The notes below the pieces were generated by a model. That model saw nothing but the letters and a program-made list of their open reading frames with translations, had not been told where the DNA came from and searched no databases. A program made the position numbers and the translations under genes. DNA of 64,000 bases, from sequence record NC_004629.1; one strand, 5' to 3'. This document shows positions 4,146-53,004 of the stretch, piece after piece (positions within the stretch are counted from its first letter, which is position 1; each line of letters begins with the position of its first letter).

Positions 4146-4173
4146 ATTCAAACCATTTTAACCAGTATATCAC
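4146..4173 (+). promoter_or_regulatory. early promoter variant (TATATCAC)
   Basis: attcaaaccattttaaccagTATATCAC, same family as 2141, 2645 and 4496. Confidence 0.7.
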
Positions 4174-4218
4174 AACAGTGTAATTAAACCTATTAAATCA
4201 GTAAAAAGGAATCAAACT

Positions 4219-4495: not shown

Positions 4496-4559
4496 ATTCA
4501 AACATATTTAAACAGTATATTACTAACTTGATATTTAACCTTCAATTAATGTAAAAAGG
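4496..4559 (+). promoter_or_regulatory. early promoter plus leader; 64-bp repeat copy 2
   Basis: TATATTAC at 4516-4523; near-identical to 2645-2708. Confidence 0.85.
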
Positions 4560-47922: not shown

Positions 47923-49167
47923 ATGGGTCTTTATGCCAAAGTTGTTGATCATAATGAAGTTCATGATCAATTTACGGGTAAACGAATTTATGCCAATGAT
48001 TACAATACGAGTAACTCAGATGAGAAAGAAGAATTTGATAGGCATTTCTATTCTCATTTCCAAGATTCAGAAGCAATTGAAAGTAGTGTAAGCTGTGATT
48101 GTCGAGCAATCGAAGACGCACATAAACTCGGAGTAATCTGTGATATTTGTAATACTCCAGTTGTCAATACTTCTAGCCGCCCTATCGAACCATCAATGTG
48201 GGTTCGTACACCAAAACACGTACGTAGCCTAATTAACCCACGTTTAATCATTATGCTAACCGGATATCTAGTAACTAAAGAATTCGATTTCTTAGCATAT
48301 CTAACTGATACTTCTTATCGATACGATGTAGAATCTATTGGTTCTAAAGAAACACGCAGGAAAGTAGATAGGCTACTGCATCGAGGATTTGAAAGAGGAT
48401 TAAATCACTTCATTGATAATTTCAATGAGATCTTCCAATTCCTACTAGATGCAAATATTATCTCTAATAATAAATCCGAATTCGCTCAATTCGTTGCTCA
48501 GAATAAAGATAAGTTATTCCCTAAATATTTACCAGTTCCTTCTAAACTCTGTTTCGTAGCAGAATCAACCACATCTGGTACTTACTTAGATAAACCAATT
48601 GAAGCAGCAATTGATGCTACCTTAACCTTCGCTAGTATTGATGCATCATCTGTACCACTTAGTCCAATTAAAGCTCAGAATAGGACTATGCGAGGACTAA
48701 GACTATATGGCCAGTTCTACGAGATCTACGCAAAATCACGAATTGCTCAAAAGCCTGGTCTTGCTCGGCGTCACATGTTTGGTGCTCGTCTCAACGCTAC
48801 GGCACGTGCAGTAATCACTTCTATTAGTGACCCGCATGATTATGATGAATTACATATTCCGTGGGGAGTAGGTTGTCAATTATTAAAGTATCATCTAACT
48901 AACAAGCTAAAAGCTAAGTTTAACATGACAACTCGTGAAGCATTCTCATTTGTATATGAGAATGTACTTCAATATAACCAAATCATCGCAGATCTATTTA
49001 AAGAGTTAATTGCAGAAGCAGCCCCTTATAAAGGAATGGGTTGTACTTTTCACCGAAATCCAACGCTTCAACGTGGATCTACGCAGCAGTTCTTTATTAC
49101 TAAAGTAAAAGATGACATTAATGATAATTCTATCAGCATGTCAGTTTTATGCCTTAAAGCGCCTAAT
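47923..49167 (+). CDS. non-virion RNA polymerase beta' N-terminal subunit, exon 1 (gp55)
   Basis: AGGAG SD; Zn finger CDC...CDIC; HRNPTLQ; ends KAPN, the N of NADFDGD. Confidence 0.9.
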
Positions 49168-50539
49168 GGACAATTGAATAACTAAATAAGGGTAAAAACA
49201 ATGGAACAAAACGGAGTAGTGTCCGTCTTTGATCCGGCTTCATTTAAAATTGAATGGCGGGATATTCCTGGATACTCAGCATATGAAGCTAGTAACTTAG
49301 GAACAATTCGTCATAAGCGGTTAAATAGAATATGTAATTTCTTCCTTACTAAAACATCGATTGGGACATATCTCAATATTGGTGCAAAAAATGATGAAAA
49401 AACATCTAAGAGTAAGGGTGTTCATATATTAATCTGTTTAGCTTTCCATGGTCCATCACCTGGACCAAATTATGAAGTCAATCATAAAGACGGCAACAAA
49501 CATAATAATTTACCATCTAATTTGGAGTGGATGACTCGTGGTGAAAACATTGAGCATGCTTACAAAAATGGATTAAGAAAAGAAAATAGACGGGTAATTG
49601 CAACTGACGTTACCACTGGTGAAAAGACTACTTATTACTCGATGAGTGAACTTGCTCGGGCATTAGGAGTTAATAAAAATACGGTTTGGGTTATTATACG
49701 TGATCATAAGACTAAGCCGTATAGAAATAGATTCACATTTGAATTTATTACCGGTGAGACTAAGATTGCTGATCGAGATAGTACCAAGACAGTTTATGTT
49801 TTAGACTATAAGACTAAGACATTACATGTGTTTCATAACTTAGCTGAAATGGAACTTGCACTGGGTACTAAACGTAATAAAGCCTATTACCATCTAGTTA
49901 GAGGTAGTAAGGAAATCATGGATGGTTTGGTATTCTCATATACCGCTAATCCTGAAGATTTCCCTAAATACACTCAAAAAGAAATTGAAGCCTCATTTGG
50001 AAAACCTAGTAATGGAAAAGGTACTCCAATTGAAGTAACTGACACCATCTTGAACACTACCAAAGTGTATCCGAGTATTCCACACTTTGCAAGAGATGTC
50101 GGTATTAAGCATCCGAATACTGTTCGAAGAGCAATCTTTGAAAAGAATGGGGTGCTTGATAAATACCTTATTAAGTTAATCAAATCTAGTTCCCCCAATG
50201 AGTAATCGTTGGGTTGAGTTCTCTCTAATTGCTGGGATATCCTGTTAAACTAATCTACCACTGCGAGTCGAAAGACAAAGCCAAGGTTTGAAAAAGATTA
50301 GGTAGGGCCAATCAGCAGCCAAGCTCCGTAACATTCCATTTAGGAATAGGAGAAGGTTCAACGACTATTACGGTATCAGGTGCACCGGTCCTAGAAATAG
50401 GATGTAGGGTCAAGTGACTCGAAATGGGAGACACCCCACTCCGAAAGGAAGGGTGAAGATATAGTCTGGTCTTCTAGCGAGAGCTAGAGCTGCACGTAAT
50501 GGTGCGGGTATCAATTAACGACTGATACTGAACAATACG
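49168..50539 (+). mobile_element. group I intron (IA-like) interrupting the RNAP catalytic motif NADFDGD
   Basis: exon ends in U and intron ends in G; P aattgctgggata at 50227, Q aatcagcagcc at 50310, R gttcaacgactat at 50356, S aagatatagtct at 50456; P3 50220-50225/50426-50431; splicing restores the frame. Confidence 0.92.
49201..50205 (+). CDS. intron-encoded HNH homing endonuclease (NUMOD4-HNH-NUMOD1 type, gp56)
   Basis: WRDIPGYSAYEASNLG (NUMOD4); VNHKDGNKHNNLPSNLEW...N.EH (HNH); three HTH-like repeats such as YSMSELARALG. Confidence 0.92.
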   Translation: MEQNGVVSVFDPASFKIEWRDIPGYSAYEASNLGTIRHKRLNRICNFFLTKTSIGTYLNIGAKNDEKTSKSKGVHILICLAFHGPSPGPNYEVNHKDGNKHNNLPSNLEWMTRGENIEHAYKNGLRKENRRVIATDVTTGEKTTYYSMSELARALGVNKNTVWVIIRDHKTKPYRNRFTFEFITGETKIADRDSTKTVYVLDYKTKTLHVFHNLAEMELALGTKRNKAYYHLVRGSKEIMDGLVFSYTANPEDFPKYTQKEIEASFGKPSNGKGTPIEVTDTILNTTKVYPSIPHFARDVGIKHPNTVRRAIFEKNGVLDKYLIKLIKSSSPNE

Positions 50540-50761
50540 GCTGATTTTGACGGCGATCAATTGAATCTTACGTTAATGCCTGATGTGTATCTAACTAAAG
50601 CAACTGAACGCATTGCACCACACACGTGGGTTCTATCTATTGATGAACCACATGAAATCTCAGGTAACCTTGAATTACAGGGTCCTGTTGTAGAAACAAT
50701 TATTAACTGGGCACATGAGAAGTATTTACCGCCATTAGAAGAATGGCTAAAAGCAAAATAA
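50540..50761 (+). CDS. nvRNAP beta' N-terminal subunit, exon 2 (gp56.1)
   Basis: begins gct gat ttt gac ggc gat = ADFDGD; spliced product is about 488 aa. Confidence 0.9.
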   Translation, partial: ADFDGDQLNLTLMPDVYLTKATERIAPHTWVLSIDEPHEISGNLELQGPVVETIINWAHEKYLPPLEEWLKAK

Positions 50762-50763
50762 AT

Positions 50764-50796
50764 TAATAGGGGAGTCTAACTCCCCTATTATTTCTT
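50764..50796 (+). terminator. intrinsic terminator
   Basis: taataggggag-TCTAA-ctcccctatta followed by TTTCTTT. Confidence 0.85.
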
Positions 50797-50809
50797 TGAG
50801 GCTGGTAGC

Positions 50810-51193
50810 ATGCATGATTTAGTCATCTATTGGAAAGCTCATGATGGTTACTACATACAAGATGAACATGGCGAACATCCTGTAACTTTCCAATTCGCAG
50901 AAATTAATTGGAATTTCACCGGAGCTTATGAATACGGTGGTTCTGAATTAATTGATGATCACTTAAGGTTTGGTATAGATTTCAAAGTACGTGATATTGA
51001 ATGGCAAATTAGGTTTGATTTAAACGGTAAATTTACTCTGTACAATATGTCAAATAATGATCGGGATGATACCTTTGTAATTCCAGCTACTTCAAAATTT
51101 GCCCAATTCTTTAAAAAGACAGGCAAACATGTAGTTACTAATGAAGTTATCACTATCCCAATTAATTGCTCTTTTGATAAGCAAATTTATTAA
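50810..51193 (+). CDS. hypothetical protein
   Basis: 127-aa ORF with GAGG SD. Confidence 0.75.
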   Translation: MHDLVIYWKAHDGYYIQDEHGEHPVTFQFAEINWNFTGAYEYGGSELIDDHLRFGIDFKVRDIEWQIRFDLNGKFTLYNMSNNDRDDTFVIPATSKFAQFFKKTGKHVVTNEVITIPINCSFDKQIY

Positions 51194-51205
51194 AGGTAAA
51201 TAAGG

Positions 51206-51631
51206 ATGAATAGTAAATGTAATGAATGTACTAAGCAAATCGATAATTCCCATGATGCACCAAAAACACTTGGTATCTGCCATAAGCATTATCGGTTCAG
51301 TGTATTTGGGGATAATGGTTTACTTAAAGATTCAGATAAACTAGTTACATTTAAACTTAATAAAGAAACTAATCTATTTGAATGTATTCTAGAAAATACT
51401 AAAGGTGAGTATACGGGATTCCATCATCCTAAGTTTGGATTCCGTATTAAACATGATGATCCAATCACTATTGTGGTGACTGCACCTGAACATGACATCT
51501 ATGTTGAATTAACTGTAACTGTTGAAGGTGTTACAAAAGCTATCAATTGGATCGGTCAGGAACTAGACACATTTAACCTACCTATACAACATCCGTTTAA
51601 TCTATGTTGGTCATATACGGCCAATAACTGA
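51206..51631 (+). CDS. hypothetical protein
   Basis: 141-aa ORF with AAGGA SD. Confidence 0.75.
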   Translation: MNSKCNECTKQIDNSHDAPKTLGICHKHYRFSVFGDNGLLKDSDKLVTFKLNKETNLFECILENTKGEYTGFHHPKFGFRIKHDDPITIVVTAPEHDIYVELTVTVEGVTKAINWIGQELDTFNLPIQHPFNLCWSYTANN

Positions 51632-51639
51632 AGTGTATA

Positions 51640-51699
51640 ATGGTTATAGATACTCATGGTGTGGACCTATTGGACAGTTGCGCCGTGAAGTTATACTGA
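51640..51699 (+). pseudogene. truncated, diverged duplicate of the 5' end of the 52006 gene
   Basis: MVIDTHGVDLLDSCA versus MIVDAHGVDLLDICA; 35/45 nt identical. Confidence 0.8.
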
Positions 51700-51722
51700 A
51701 TTCAATTTCAGATTTATATTAC
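51699..51722 (+). promoter_or_regulatory. early promoter
   Basis: aattcaatttcagattTATATTAC (core 51715-51722). Confidence 0.75.
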
Positions 51723-51753
51723 TAAGGTGCAATAGTGATAAGGGGAATACCCA

Positions 51754-51936
51754 ATGTCTAATATTCGTGAAATTATTCGACGTAACCCGGAATGTTTATC
51801 ACAAGCTGAACGAGATGAACGTGAAGCCAGATCGGTAGCCATGATAACTGGGAGATATATTACTCGTGGGAATGGTGATGTAGTGGTAAACAGTAGGTTT
51901 GTCGATGCATATGTCGAAATGATCTCTAAGCTTTAA
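51754..51936 (+). CDS. small early hypothetical protein
   Basis: 60 aa; AAGGGGA SD directly after an early promoter. Confidence 0.7.
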   Translation: MSNIREIIRRNPECLSQAERDEREARSVAMITGRYITRGNGDVVVNSRFVDAYVEMISKL

Positions 51937-52005
51937 GGGGTAATCTATTATGCAACATCAATTTAATCTATGCTGGGTATATGAGTACAGTATCTGAGGT
52001 GAATA

Positions 52006-52617
52006 ATGATTGTAGATGCACATGGTGTAGACCTCTTGGACATCTGTGCAGGTGGCCATCTTACACAGCAAACAACTCAATGGTTGGGTGAGCGTAGCCA
52101 GGCATTGCGTTCAACTATGTCAACTGCTGCTGCTAGCTTTTTCAATACTGCACAAAATATGTACAGTATGATTAGTGAATCAGCTGCTGTTCAAGCACTG
52201 CGGAATCTAACCACAAAGAAAGATAATTTATGGCAGTCTAACAACATTGTGTATCTTGAGACATTAGCTGAACTACAAACAGCTGGTCCGATTATGCAAC
52301 GTTGGGTTATGGCGCATGAGCGTCTAAGAACTATGTATCTTAATAATGAAGTTGATGGATATGGTGGTTCTTATAATAACATCCAAGGTGATGCTGTAGG
52401 TGAACGACAGTTTGATTATCGTCGCGTGATGGATGGAGTTATGTATACCGATAAGAAAGAATTCGGTTATAAAAACTATCACGAAGATATCAAGAGCGAT
52501 CGTAAACTTAGTCTGCACGAGAAAGTTGACATTATCCGTATGTGGAATGCTATTGATGGGCATCTGGACGCAGGTGAAGAAGATCCAACTTCAGTCGTAG
52601 GTAATCTTCTAGGTTAA
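52006..52617 (+). CDS. conserved phiKZ-family protein (gp59-like; possibly the Imp3 import factor)
   Basis: 203 aa; GAGGTG SD; the Imp3 link rests on recalled gene numbering only. Confidence 0.6.
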   Translation: MIVDAHGVDLLDICAGGHLTQQTTQWLGERSQALRSTMSTAAASFFNTAQNMYSMISESAAVQALRNLTTKKDNLWQSNNIVYLETLAELQTAGPIMQRWVMAHERLRTMYLNNEVDGYGGSYNNIQGDAVGERQFDYRRVMDGVMYTDKKEFGYKNYHEDIKSDRKLSLHEKVDIIRMWNAIDGHLDAGEEDPTSVVGNLLG

Positions 52618-52623
52618 ATAAAT

Positions 52624-52650
52624 GAGAGTCCCTACATGGGGCTCTCTTCT
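52624..52650 (+). terminator. intrinsic terminator
   Basis: gagagtccc-TACAT-ggggctctc followed by TTCT. Confidence 0.7.
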
Positions 52651-52668
52651 ATCGTTTAGGAGAGATCT

Positions 52669-53004
52669 ATGTCAATTGATCTACTCGTACCAAATAAACT
52701 AAAGATGTTTCAAAAAAGTCCAGATGGTACGGGATATATGTACTTTAATAGTACAGATGGGATAGAACTTAAACACGATAATCAAACACGACTATTGTAT
52801 CTTCCTGATAATGTCTATGTAACTGGTGATTATGTTTCACCTGATACTAAATTTATTTTCACAGTTATTGAAGGTGAAGTGGTCTCTATTAAATTAGATA
52901 CTGGCGAGGAAATACATAGTTATAGTTTTTGTGATGAGAGTCCATTGTGGAACCATCCACATATTGCTTTTTACGTTAAGGAAAATACAGATGCTATTAA
53001 TTAA
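52669..53004 (+). CDS. hypothetical protein
   Basis: 111-aa ORF with AGGAG SD. Confidence 0.75.
   Translation: MSIDLLVPNKLKMFQKSPDGTGYMYFNSTDGIELKHDNQTRLLYLPDNVYVTGDYVSPDTKFIFTVIEGEVVSIKLDTGEEIHSYSFCDESPLWNHPHIAFYVKENTDAIN

Follow-up and report, generated by a model that had tools for sequence, protein, structure and literature searches.

Why does the jumbo phage phiKZ carry the beginning of one of its essential genes twice, with an early promoter and a small gene between the two copies? The stretch of DNA analysed here, hereafter the window, comprises bases 1-64000 of the phiKZ genome (NC_004629.1) in the same coordinates, and over 51100-52700 the match to AF399011/NC_004629 is 100%. The gene in question is gp59 (52006-52617; identified by annotation, PHROG 3254 and the literature), which has been named Imp3 and described as a conserved, essential factor for protein import into the phage nucleus (10.1101/2024.03.27.586873). 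Our analysis suggests that the segment 51583-52050 is probably the scar of an illegitimate, microhomology-level recombination between genomes that differed in the accessory genes they carried between the gene for the RNA polymerase (RNAP) beta subunit and imp3. The repeat copies, the cassette between them with its promoter and reading frames, the ribosome-binding sequences, the alternative insertion site and genes 56.1, gp58 and gp59 all lie on the plus strand.

The initial annotation had noticed a diverged duplicate of the 5' end of gp59, and the sequence bears this out: 51640-51684 encodes MVIDTHGVDLLDSCA and 52006-52050 encodes MIVDAHGVDLLDICA, with 35/45 identical nucleotides and 11/15 identical amino acids. 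Four of the ten nucleotide differences are purely synonymous third positions, and the contexts upstream of the two copies also match (aagtgtataATG vs aggtgaataATG). A repeat search showed that more than the start of gp59 is repeated. The full direct repeat, 51583-51683 vs 51949-52049, is identical at 78 of 101 positions (77%) with a spacing of 366 nucleotides (nt), and it spans the final 16 codons of gp58, the intergenic Shine-Dalgarno (SD) sequence and the opening 45 nt of gp59. When 51000-52700 was shuffled 200 times with its dinucleotides preserved, the top 101-nt diagonal averaged 48.2 identities (standard deviation 1.4) and reached at most 52; the direct repeat is real and far beyond chance. 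Copy A (51583-51684) consists of the real gp58 tail, that is its final 16 codons and stop, with the intergenic sequence (51583-51639), followed by a dead stub of imp3 codons 1-15 (51640-51684). Copy B (51949-52050) consists of a redundant gp58-tail remnant (51949-52005) followed by the real imp3 start (52006-52050), and it contains the imp3 SD sequence, GAGGTG, at 51996-52001.

Between the copies lies a discrete promoter-plus-gene unit, again as first proposed. Its core (51685-51933) begins with a phiKZ early promoter motif of the virion RNA polymerase type at 51690-51734, with TATATTAC at 51715-51722, an AT-rich consensus and an upstream T/A-rich element. The early promoter previously placed at 51715 is upheld by a weight matrix built from eight other TATATTAC sites in the window, which gives this left-out site 32.3 bits; only 11 sites in the 64 kb reach at least 12 bits, all on the plus strand, and 50500-52800 holds just this one motif. 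The consensus of phiKZ early promoters has been described before (PMC8244752, PMC10914365), and a transcription start site has been reported upstream of orf59 (10.1101/2025.11.23.690004). The promoter is followed by a 60-amino-acid open reading frame (ORF) at 51754-51936, annotated as ORF 58.1 (PHIKZ058.1, PHIKZ_p18) and here called p18. The p18 stop, a ribosome-binding site (RBS) and ATGCAACATCAA occupy 51934-51961, where they are joined to the gp58-tail remnant. Two further small ORFs flank the unit. An orphan ORF of 19 codons plus stop (MVIDTHGVDLLDSCAVKLY*, 51640-51699) starts at the imp3 stub and runs into the upstream edge of the promoter, and a mini-ORF of 15 codons plus stop (MQHQFNLCWVYEYSI*, 51950-51997), absent from the initial annotation, has its own RBS, AAGGGG, upstream.

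A comparison of relatives shows that this arrangement is one of three. We surveyed 47 Phikzvirus records that cover the locus, checking 8, 6 and 3 loci of classes i, ii and iii, respectively, at the sequence level and assigning the remaining records from BLAST geometry. Class i (14/47) is collinear with phiKZ, with the cassette between gp58 and imp3, and includes phiKZ, SL2, 30-1, NK1, FBPa36, KEN49, fnug, KTN4, Brmt, LC, OMKO1 and fMGyn-Pae01. Class ii (26/47), which includes PA7, GUMS, T2P, kmuB, PhiPizzaParty, Churi and others, has the cassette between 56.1 and gp57 and a single gp58/imp3 junction. Class iii (7/47; PA02, 124.01, 2PS, 6B, 9-Ps-8B, 9Ps-7B and 14Ps5-6) has no cassette. The core thus occurs in 40 of the surveyed records, and in the 26 class ii records it is 92-95% identical to that of phiKZ (for example, blastn to L002 1001-1249 at 93.6%). 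The 33 of 47 relatives in classes ii and iii have imp3 directly behind gp58 at a single junction, all with the copy B N-terminus MIVDAHGVDLLDICA; the two copies are therefore far from universal, and alleles of the kind that the initial annotation had suggested looking for exist.

These single junctions reveal what each phiKZ copy has retained. With the exception of PA02, which has all of copy B, they consist of the left half of copy A and the right half of copy B, and therefore each phiKZ copy keeps one functional half. The left half of copy A matches the single junctions of relatives, while its right half differs from them at 6-10/45 nt; the right half of copy B is identical or near-identical to all of them, and its left half (the "b" type of gp58 tail) otherwise occurs only in PA02. 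It is the redundant halves that have diverged, the imp3 stub in copy A at 10/45 positions and the gp58-tail remnant in copy B at 14/57 (~20%). Furthermore, the orphan ORF is preceded by a degenerate SD sequence, GAAGTG (51630-51635), in place of the native GAGGTG, a G-to-A change found in 8/8 class i loci examined and in no B copy or single junction. Three stub variants exist among these eight loci (MVIDTHGVDLLDSCAVKLY, MIIDAHGVDLLNSCAVKLH and MIIDAHGVDLLDNYAVKLH), and the phiKZ stub differs from those of FBPa36, KTN4 and OMKO1 at 9-10/45 nt, compared with 0.5-4% in neighbouring segments. The neutral divergence is estimated at ~12%, if the gp58 differences are synonymous, so that the stub appears to diverge among phiKZ-type phages at roughly the neutral rate, as would a dead fragment. 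Hypermutation of the stub was considered on the basis of its 20% divergence against 0.5-4% in its neighbours, and was set aside because the excess over the ~12% neutral rate is not convincing. A swapped-allele patch of 18 nt among the left-half differences was likewise dropped, since the clustering is not significant (p=0.23).

The same cassette at a second site provides a view of its boundaries. The alternative site, empty in phiKZ, is at 50742-50790 and comprises the 3' end of 56.1 and a terminator hairpin at 50764-50790; it holds the cassette in the 26 class ii records. There, 56.1 ends in a diverged tail, EEWLKS* (vs EEWLKAK*), with a different strong hairpin, followed by ~55 nt found in these 26 records only, then by the promoter and a p18 in which two additional codons (ND) stand in place of the stop, and finally by 20 nt that repeat the 56.1 end (AATGATTAAAAGCAAAATAA vs AATGGCTAAAAGCAAAATAA, 13/20) and the usual terminator. 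The cassette unit of PA7-type phages is therefore bracketed by two hairpins. Class ii does not have the p18-stop/RBS segment that class i has in common with the metagenomic relative L019, and class i does not have the class ii left flank. Because each class is without the other's flanking segment, neither cassette order derives from the other.

More distant relatives contain p18 in further settings. In L019 and L020, a 171-amino-acid gene is followed by the same promoter motif, p18, its stop, the RBS and the imp3 ATG, with no duplication. L024, whose p18 is 51% identical at the amino acid level, also has p18 directly upstream of imp3 (TAAGGGG...ATG) and no duplication. L026 and L027 have the order RNAP-beta, p18, gp57, two other genes and imp3, which is the class ii order, while L025 has a p18 homologue in a different context. 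The 60-amino-acid ORF therefore does occur elsewhere, both between 56.1 and gp57 and in distant phages, a question that the initial annotation had raised. Two outgroups have no p18: Psa21 has RNAP-beta, gp57 and imp3, and BRkr has RNAP-beta and imp3. These varied orders make the RNAP-beta-to-imp3 interval a hot spot for accessory genes either side of p18.

The junctions of these relatives also point to where the phiKZ cassette was joined. Positions 51934-51961 of phiKZ (taaggggtaatctattATGCAACATCAA) align with the L019/L020 junction, including the first imp3 codons MQ(Y/H)Q, and blastn homology with L019 extends to window position 51961; this p18/imp3 junction is intact in L019, L020 and L024. 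The gp58 tail carries TATGCAACATC where copy B starts, a microhomology of ~10 nt (TATGCAAYATC) with the donor RBS and start, and the right-hand join likely lies there, inside the gp58 tail. The left-hand join falls at codon 15/16 of imp3, within ~15 nt of the upstream edge of the promoter. The claim that a cassette had entered the start of gp59 is therefore correct as to the bracketed cassette and needs amending as to the joins, of which the right lies in the gp58 tail and the left at codon 15/16 of imp3. We also considered the orphan tail CAVKLY* as a remnant of the 171-amino-acid gene that precedes the promoter in L019 and L020, and rejected this because the alignments are no better than shuffles (p=0.4-0.5); the shared block simply begins at the upstream edge of the promoter motif.

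These comparisons lead us to the following explanation, which we consider probable. One parental genome would have had RNAP-beta, gp57, gp58 and imp3, the SD sequence of imp3 being overlapped by the stop of gp58, and the other an early promoter and p18 right before imp3, as in the three distant relatives L019, L020 and L024. In the phiKZ lineage, a promoter-p18 segment that included the p18 stop, the RBS and approximately the imp3 start codon would have landed between gp58 and imp3. The joins would have left 101 nt of gp58 tail, SD sequence and imp3 start in two copies, of which copy A supplies the working end of gp58 and copy B the working start of imp3, and the orphan 19-codon stub would be a decaying remnant. 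A separate, independent join of the same two genome types would have given the PA7-type order RNAP-beta, p18, gp57, gp58 and imp3. Cassette-free phages would then have come from ordinary recombination between both orders or from deletion via the direct repeat, which would be a substrate for homologous loss of the cassette.

Several points weigh against this explanation. No sampled genome at species-level identity has the parental order RNAP-beta, promoter, p18 and imp3; L024 is known from a contig of 1 kb, and other genes lie upstream in L019 and L020. To obtain the phiKZ order, two illegitimate joins are required, or else a single insertion that duplicated its target, and the actual path is not reconstructible. 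The inferred changes in the stub show an excess at third positions (10/17, p=0.03) that is weak and yet easier to reconcile with the import of a functional allele than with decay alone. Four RNA-seq runs are represented by contigs, which give neither transcript 5' ends nor joints at this locus. Finally, no sampled A/B pair yields the PA02 junction by one exact crossover, since one extra change, at column 44, is needed, and we discarded the idea that PA02 is such an exact crossover of a sampled phage for this reason.

Alternatively, a mobile promoter-plus-ORF cassette might have entered gp59 at its start, carrying along a foreign gp59 5' allele, and by extension a gp58 tail, that had already diverged before the insertion. 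This was the reading of the initial annotation, and we regard it as unlikely, though it draws some support from the third-position excess just mentioned, from the four synonymous changes among the ten stub differences, from the stub states GCC and GAT, which occur in imp3 of distant relatives, and from the similar divergence of both redundant halves. Yet in no sampled genome is the stub-type N-terminus found on a real imp3, and the "b" tail is a real gene end only in PA02, whose flanks equal those of phiKZ-type phages. Moreover, the diverged halves are exactly the non-functional ones, the stub differences between phiKZ-type phages are near the gp58-based neutral estimate, as decay in situ predicts, and the left-half differences are not significantly clustered. 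The foreign origin of the 5' copy is thus unproven, with the third-position excess favouring it weakly.

A Campbell-type integration of a small circle, carrying the cassette and a diverged gp58/imp3 junction, through one crossover near the imp3 ATG would explain the topology exactly, with copy A composed of resident left and incoming right halves and copy B of incoming left and resident right halves. The reverse reaction would excise a 366-bp circle, PA02 resembles the excision product, and such mini-circles are documented in T4-type phages (PMC2839356). We nevertheless think it improbable, because the formation of such a circle presupposes a genome in which the duplication is already in place, which merely moves the question back, because the repeats are gene ends rather than repeated promoter or stem-loop motifs, and because the p18-stop/RBS/ATG segment corresponds to the junction native to L019, L020 and L024, pointing to a direct join. 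More improbable still, in our estimation, is that the duplication has been kept because its small ORFs are useful, either through a 19-amino-acid peptide that mimics or competes with the Imp3 N-terminus or through tuning of imp3 translation by the stub and the mini-ORF. Both ORFs are open in 8/8 phiKZ-type loci, the stub has its weak third-position bias, and the mini-ORF has a good RBS and a stop that overlaps the imp3 SD sequence as the gp58 stop does elsewhere. However, the SD sequence of the orphan ORF is damaged (GAGG to GAAG) in every phiKZ-type genome examined, its peptide, with three sequence variants, differs at 5/19 residues among close relatives, 33/47 relatives manage without the duplication, and an open frame of only 19 codons is weak evidence. 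The idea that the 19-amino-acid peptide competes with the full-length protein thus found no support. The preferred explanation remains a microhomology-level join of two genome types.

If the cassette arrived by such a join, how did the cassette-free phages arise? The flanks of the locus are mosaic, and Brmt (class i) and PA7 (class ii) differ at just 4/773 nt in gp57-gp58. Phages 124.01 and 6B resemble phiKZ at 56.1 and over the initial 400 nt of gp57, and class ii (kmuB) from gp58 through gp61; with such mixed flanks, they are therefore recombinants that inherited each parent's empty site. PA02 has the "b" gp58 tail and differs from KTN4 at one of the 373 nt adjoining on the left and at none of the 600 nt adjoining on the right. 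The identical flanks and the "b" tail together indicate a cassette deletion through the A/B repeat. Among the sampled records, the cassette-free state looks secondary in both cases.

What the cassette may do for imp3 can be considered from its expression context. In phiKZ, no terminator-like site was found in 51936-52006, and the imp3-orf60-orf61 genes would now be transcribed together with p18 from their own virion-RNAP early promoter. The loci of class iii phages, BRkr and Psa21 contain no early-promoter motif anywhere in the 3.8-5.7 kb scanned, and in class ii loci the sole early-promoter motif is separated from gp57-imp3 by a hairpin. The initial annotation had proposed that the insertion uncoupled gp59 from its upstream operon; however, imp3 has not been left bare. 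Copy B keeps the native context in which an upstream stop overlaps the SD sequence. The TGA of the mini-ORF, which is in frame and open in the 8 aligned class i loci, overlaps the imp3 SD sequence exactly as the gp58 stop does in cassette-free phages, and the mini-ORF is presumably translated, which would preserve the native context of imp3.

Comparison of p18 with its homologues in L019 and L020 (80-82% amino acid identity) gave a ratio of nonsynonymous to synonymous substitution rates (dN/dS) of 0.06-0.11, and by this measure p18 is a real protein-coding gene under purifying selection. An AlphaFold2 model (predicted local distance difference test score of 75) has a helix-helix-hairpin-helix arrangement, with no fold match in the PDB at E<=0.001. 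Searches for p18 in IMG/VR returned PA7 only, a scan of JGI metagenome contigs found nothing, and a profile search of 1.8 billion representatives yielded five more small homologues. The gene has fared differently away from imp3. In PA7 and Churi, the two class ii phages checked for this, p18 has a nonsense change, CGA to TGA, at codon 20, plus R38C (L014 1343-1531, L021 470-658), and the nonsense codon is probably common to 16 records at 88.3% amino acid identity, in which the ORF is mostly unannotated. With a dN/dS of ~0.8 relative to class i, class ii p18, cut off from imp3 by a terminator, is decaying, and about half of the relatives either have no p18 or have it in a non-functional form.

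Escape mutations have been reported in the imp3 coding sequence and 10 bp upstream of its ATG, likely in the SD sequence, and partial complementation required the p18-imp3-orf60-orf61 block, a putative operon with p18 as its first gene (10.1101/2024.03.27.586873). In a transposon-insertion sequencing (TnSeq) study, imp3 received 0 insertions and was classed as essential, 58.1 (p18) tolerated insertions (3 sites/32 reads), and gp57 and gp60 gathered thousands of reads (10.1101/2025.11.23.690004). The low read number in 58.1 would fit a polar cost on imp3. We speculate, as a tentative possibility, that p18 is a dedicated accessory partner of Imp3, such as an assembly or expression helper, whose gene has remained next to the start codon of imp3 across several divergent lineages of chimalliviruses and, together with its virion-RNAP promoter, would set how early Imp3 is made.

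The neighbouring genes have histories of their own. Upstream of the cassette, 56.1 (50576-50761) is annotated as the C-terminal exon of the non-virion RNAP beta subunit, and gp58 (PHIKZ058, 51206-51631; annotation, ORF list) belongs to PHROG 26219, whose function is unassigned. Pfam searches gave no match for gp57, gp58, p18, Imp3 or 56.1, and PHROGs placed the locus proteins in families of unknown function only. The gp58 gene was graded apparently essential in phiKZ, with 1 site/4 reads once the gene ends were trimmed and 14 sites/9875 reads without trimming (10.1101/2025.11.23.690004); insertions are therefore tolerated at one or both gp58 ends. Such tolerance is in keeping with the natural occurrence of two highly dissimilar C-termini, …CWSYTANN* and …CWVYEYSI*. 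Though apparently essential, gp58 is found only in Phikzvirus, as a lineage-specific insertion between gp57 and imp3, while gp57 homologues occur in Psa21 and two metagenomic relatives (L019 2706-3080; L026 423-818; L006 2733-3116). RNA-seq contigs from three runs (X1, X9 and X10) join 49167 straight to 50540, and a loose contig end, ATGTCAGTTTTATGCCTTAAAGCGCCTAAT, maps uniquely to 49138-49167. From this junction, the gp56 HNH-containing intron (49168-50539, between gp55 and 56.1) is spliced at exactly those boundaries. The intron and HNH gene upstream of 56.1 are polymorphic (L002 245-358, L016 571-684, L014, L011, L012, L018), and the annotated HNH gene of PA7-type phages is a 114-nt truncated remnant only. 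For fnug, Brmt, OMKO1, KEN49 and PA7, similarity to the window begins only at query base 59, and the upstream gene layout differs.

Our findings can be set within broader models of phage genome evolution. Phage mosaicism, in the model of Hendrix, includes morons and mosaic joints that arise by illegitimate recombination. The phiKZ unit is like a moron in being a small accessory gene with its own promoter between genes that are adjacent in relatives, in its presence/absence polymorphism among near-identical genomes, and in its joints at gene boundaries with little or no homology. Unlike a moron, its promoter serves the phage-encoded virion RNA polymerase rather than host sigma-70, its joint retains a 101-nt partial duplication, and in phiKZ it is without its own terminator, so that it would also drive the essential gene downstream.

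There is also a resemblance to the promoter-early stem-loop (PeSL) cassettes and mini-circles of T4-type phages (Arbiol et al. 2010, PMC2839356; Comeau et al. 2014, PMC4122927), which are likewise early-promoter cassettes with a small ORFan gene in a variable region, shuffled among close relatives, and whose direct repeats could release a small circle. In contrast to PeSL cassettes, the phiKZ repeats are duplicated gene ends instead of promoter/stem-loop motif copies flanking an ORF, and the target adjoins a core essential gene instead of a dedicated hyperplastic region; no stem-loop was found beside the cassette promoter (50500-52800). Elsewhere in the window, a 64-nt early promoter with its 5' leader is present in three copies (2645-2708, 4146-4209 and 4496-4559, the latter two with 95% and 73% identity to the first), and these left-end repeats could serve as PeSL-like shuffling substrates. 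Features of a transposon or homing element are missing from the cassette, as the 249-nt core holds only the 60-amino-acid ORF, with no Pfam match, and no inverted repeat pairs the cassette ends. Unlike the duplications of such elements, those here are 101 nt at 77% at one site and ~20 nt at 13/20 at the other, rather than short, exact and equal.

The two studies of the imp3 locus (10.1101/2024.03.27.586873, 10.1101/2025.11.23.690004) agree with our account on the putative p18-imp3-orf60-orf61 operon, the transcription start site, the SD mutations and the essentiality of imp3. The available passages of these studies make no mention of the duplication, of the relocation, pseudogenisation or absence of p18 and its promoter in most of the Phikzvirus genomes sequenced, or of p18-imp3 linkage in distant relatives, and neither the duplication nor the three arrangements were described anywhere in the literature searched. 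Mechanistically, this is phage mosaicism of the ordinary kind, and what makes it interesting is the gene that it touched and the natural allelic series that it left.

Few genes of the import system, for which phiKZ is the model, are both core and essential. The imp3 gene is among them, and the promoter and first gene of the p18-imp3-orf60-orf61 block are a recent, polymorphic addition. Our comparison shows experimenters which parts of the block are dispensable and offers natural, isogenic-like comparisons for the timing of Imp3, while the 101-nt repeat may make laboratory stocks heterogeneous at this locus. If p18 should indeed be a partner of Imp3, as tentatively suggested above, the repeat would let populations lose the promoter-p18 unit at appreciable frequency, and the three natural states, with the unit at imp3, detached from it with p18 often a pseudogene, or absent, would serve as a ready allelic series in which to compare nuclear import in its timing and dosage. 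More broadly, the locus is a clean, dated example of how accessory genes become merged beside a core gene in jumbo phages.

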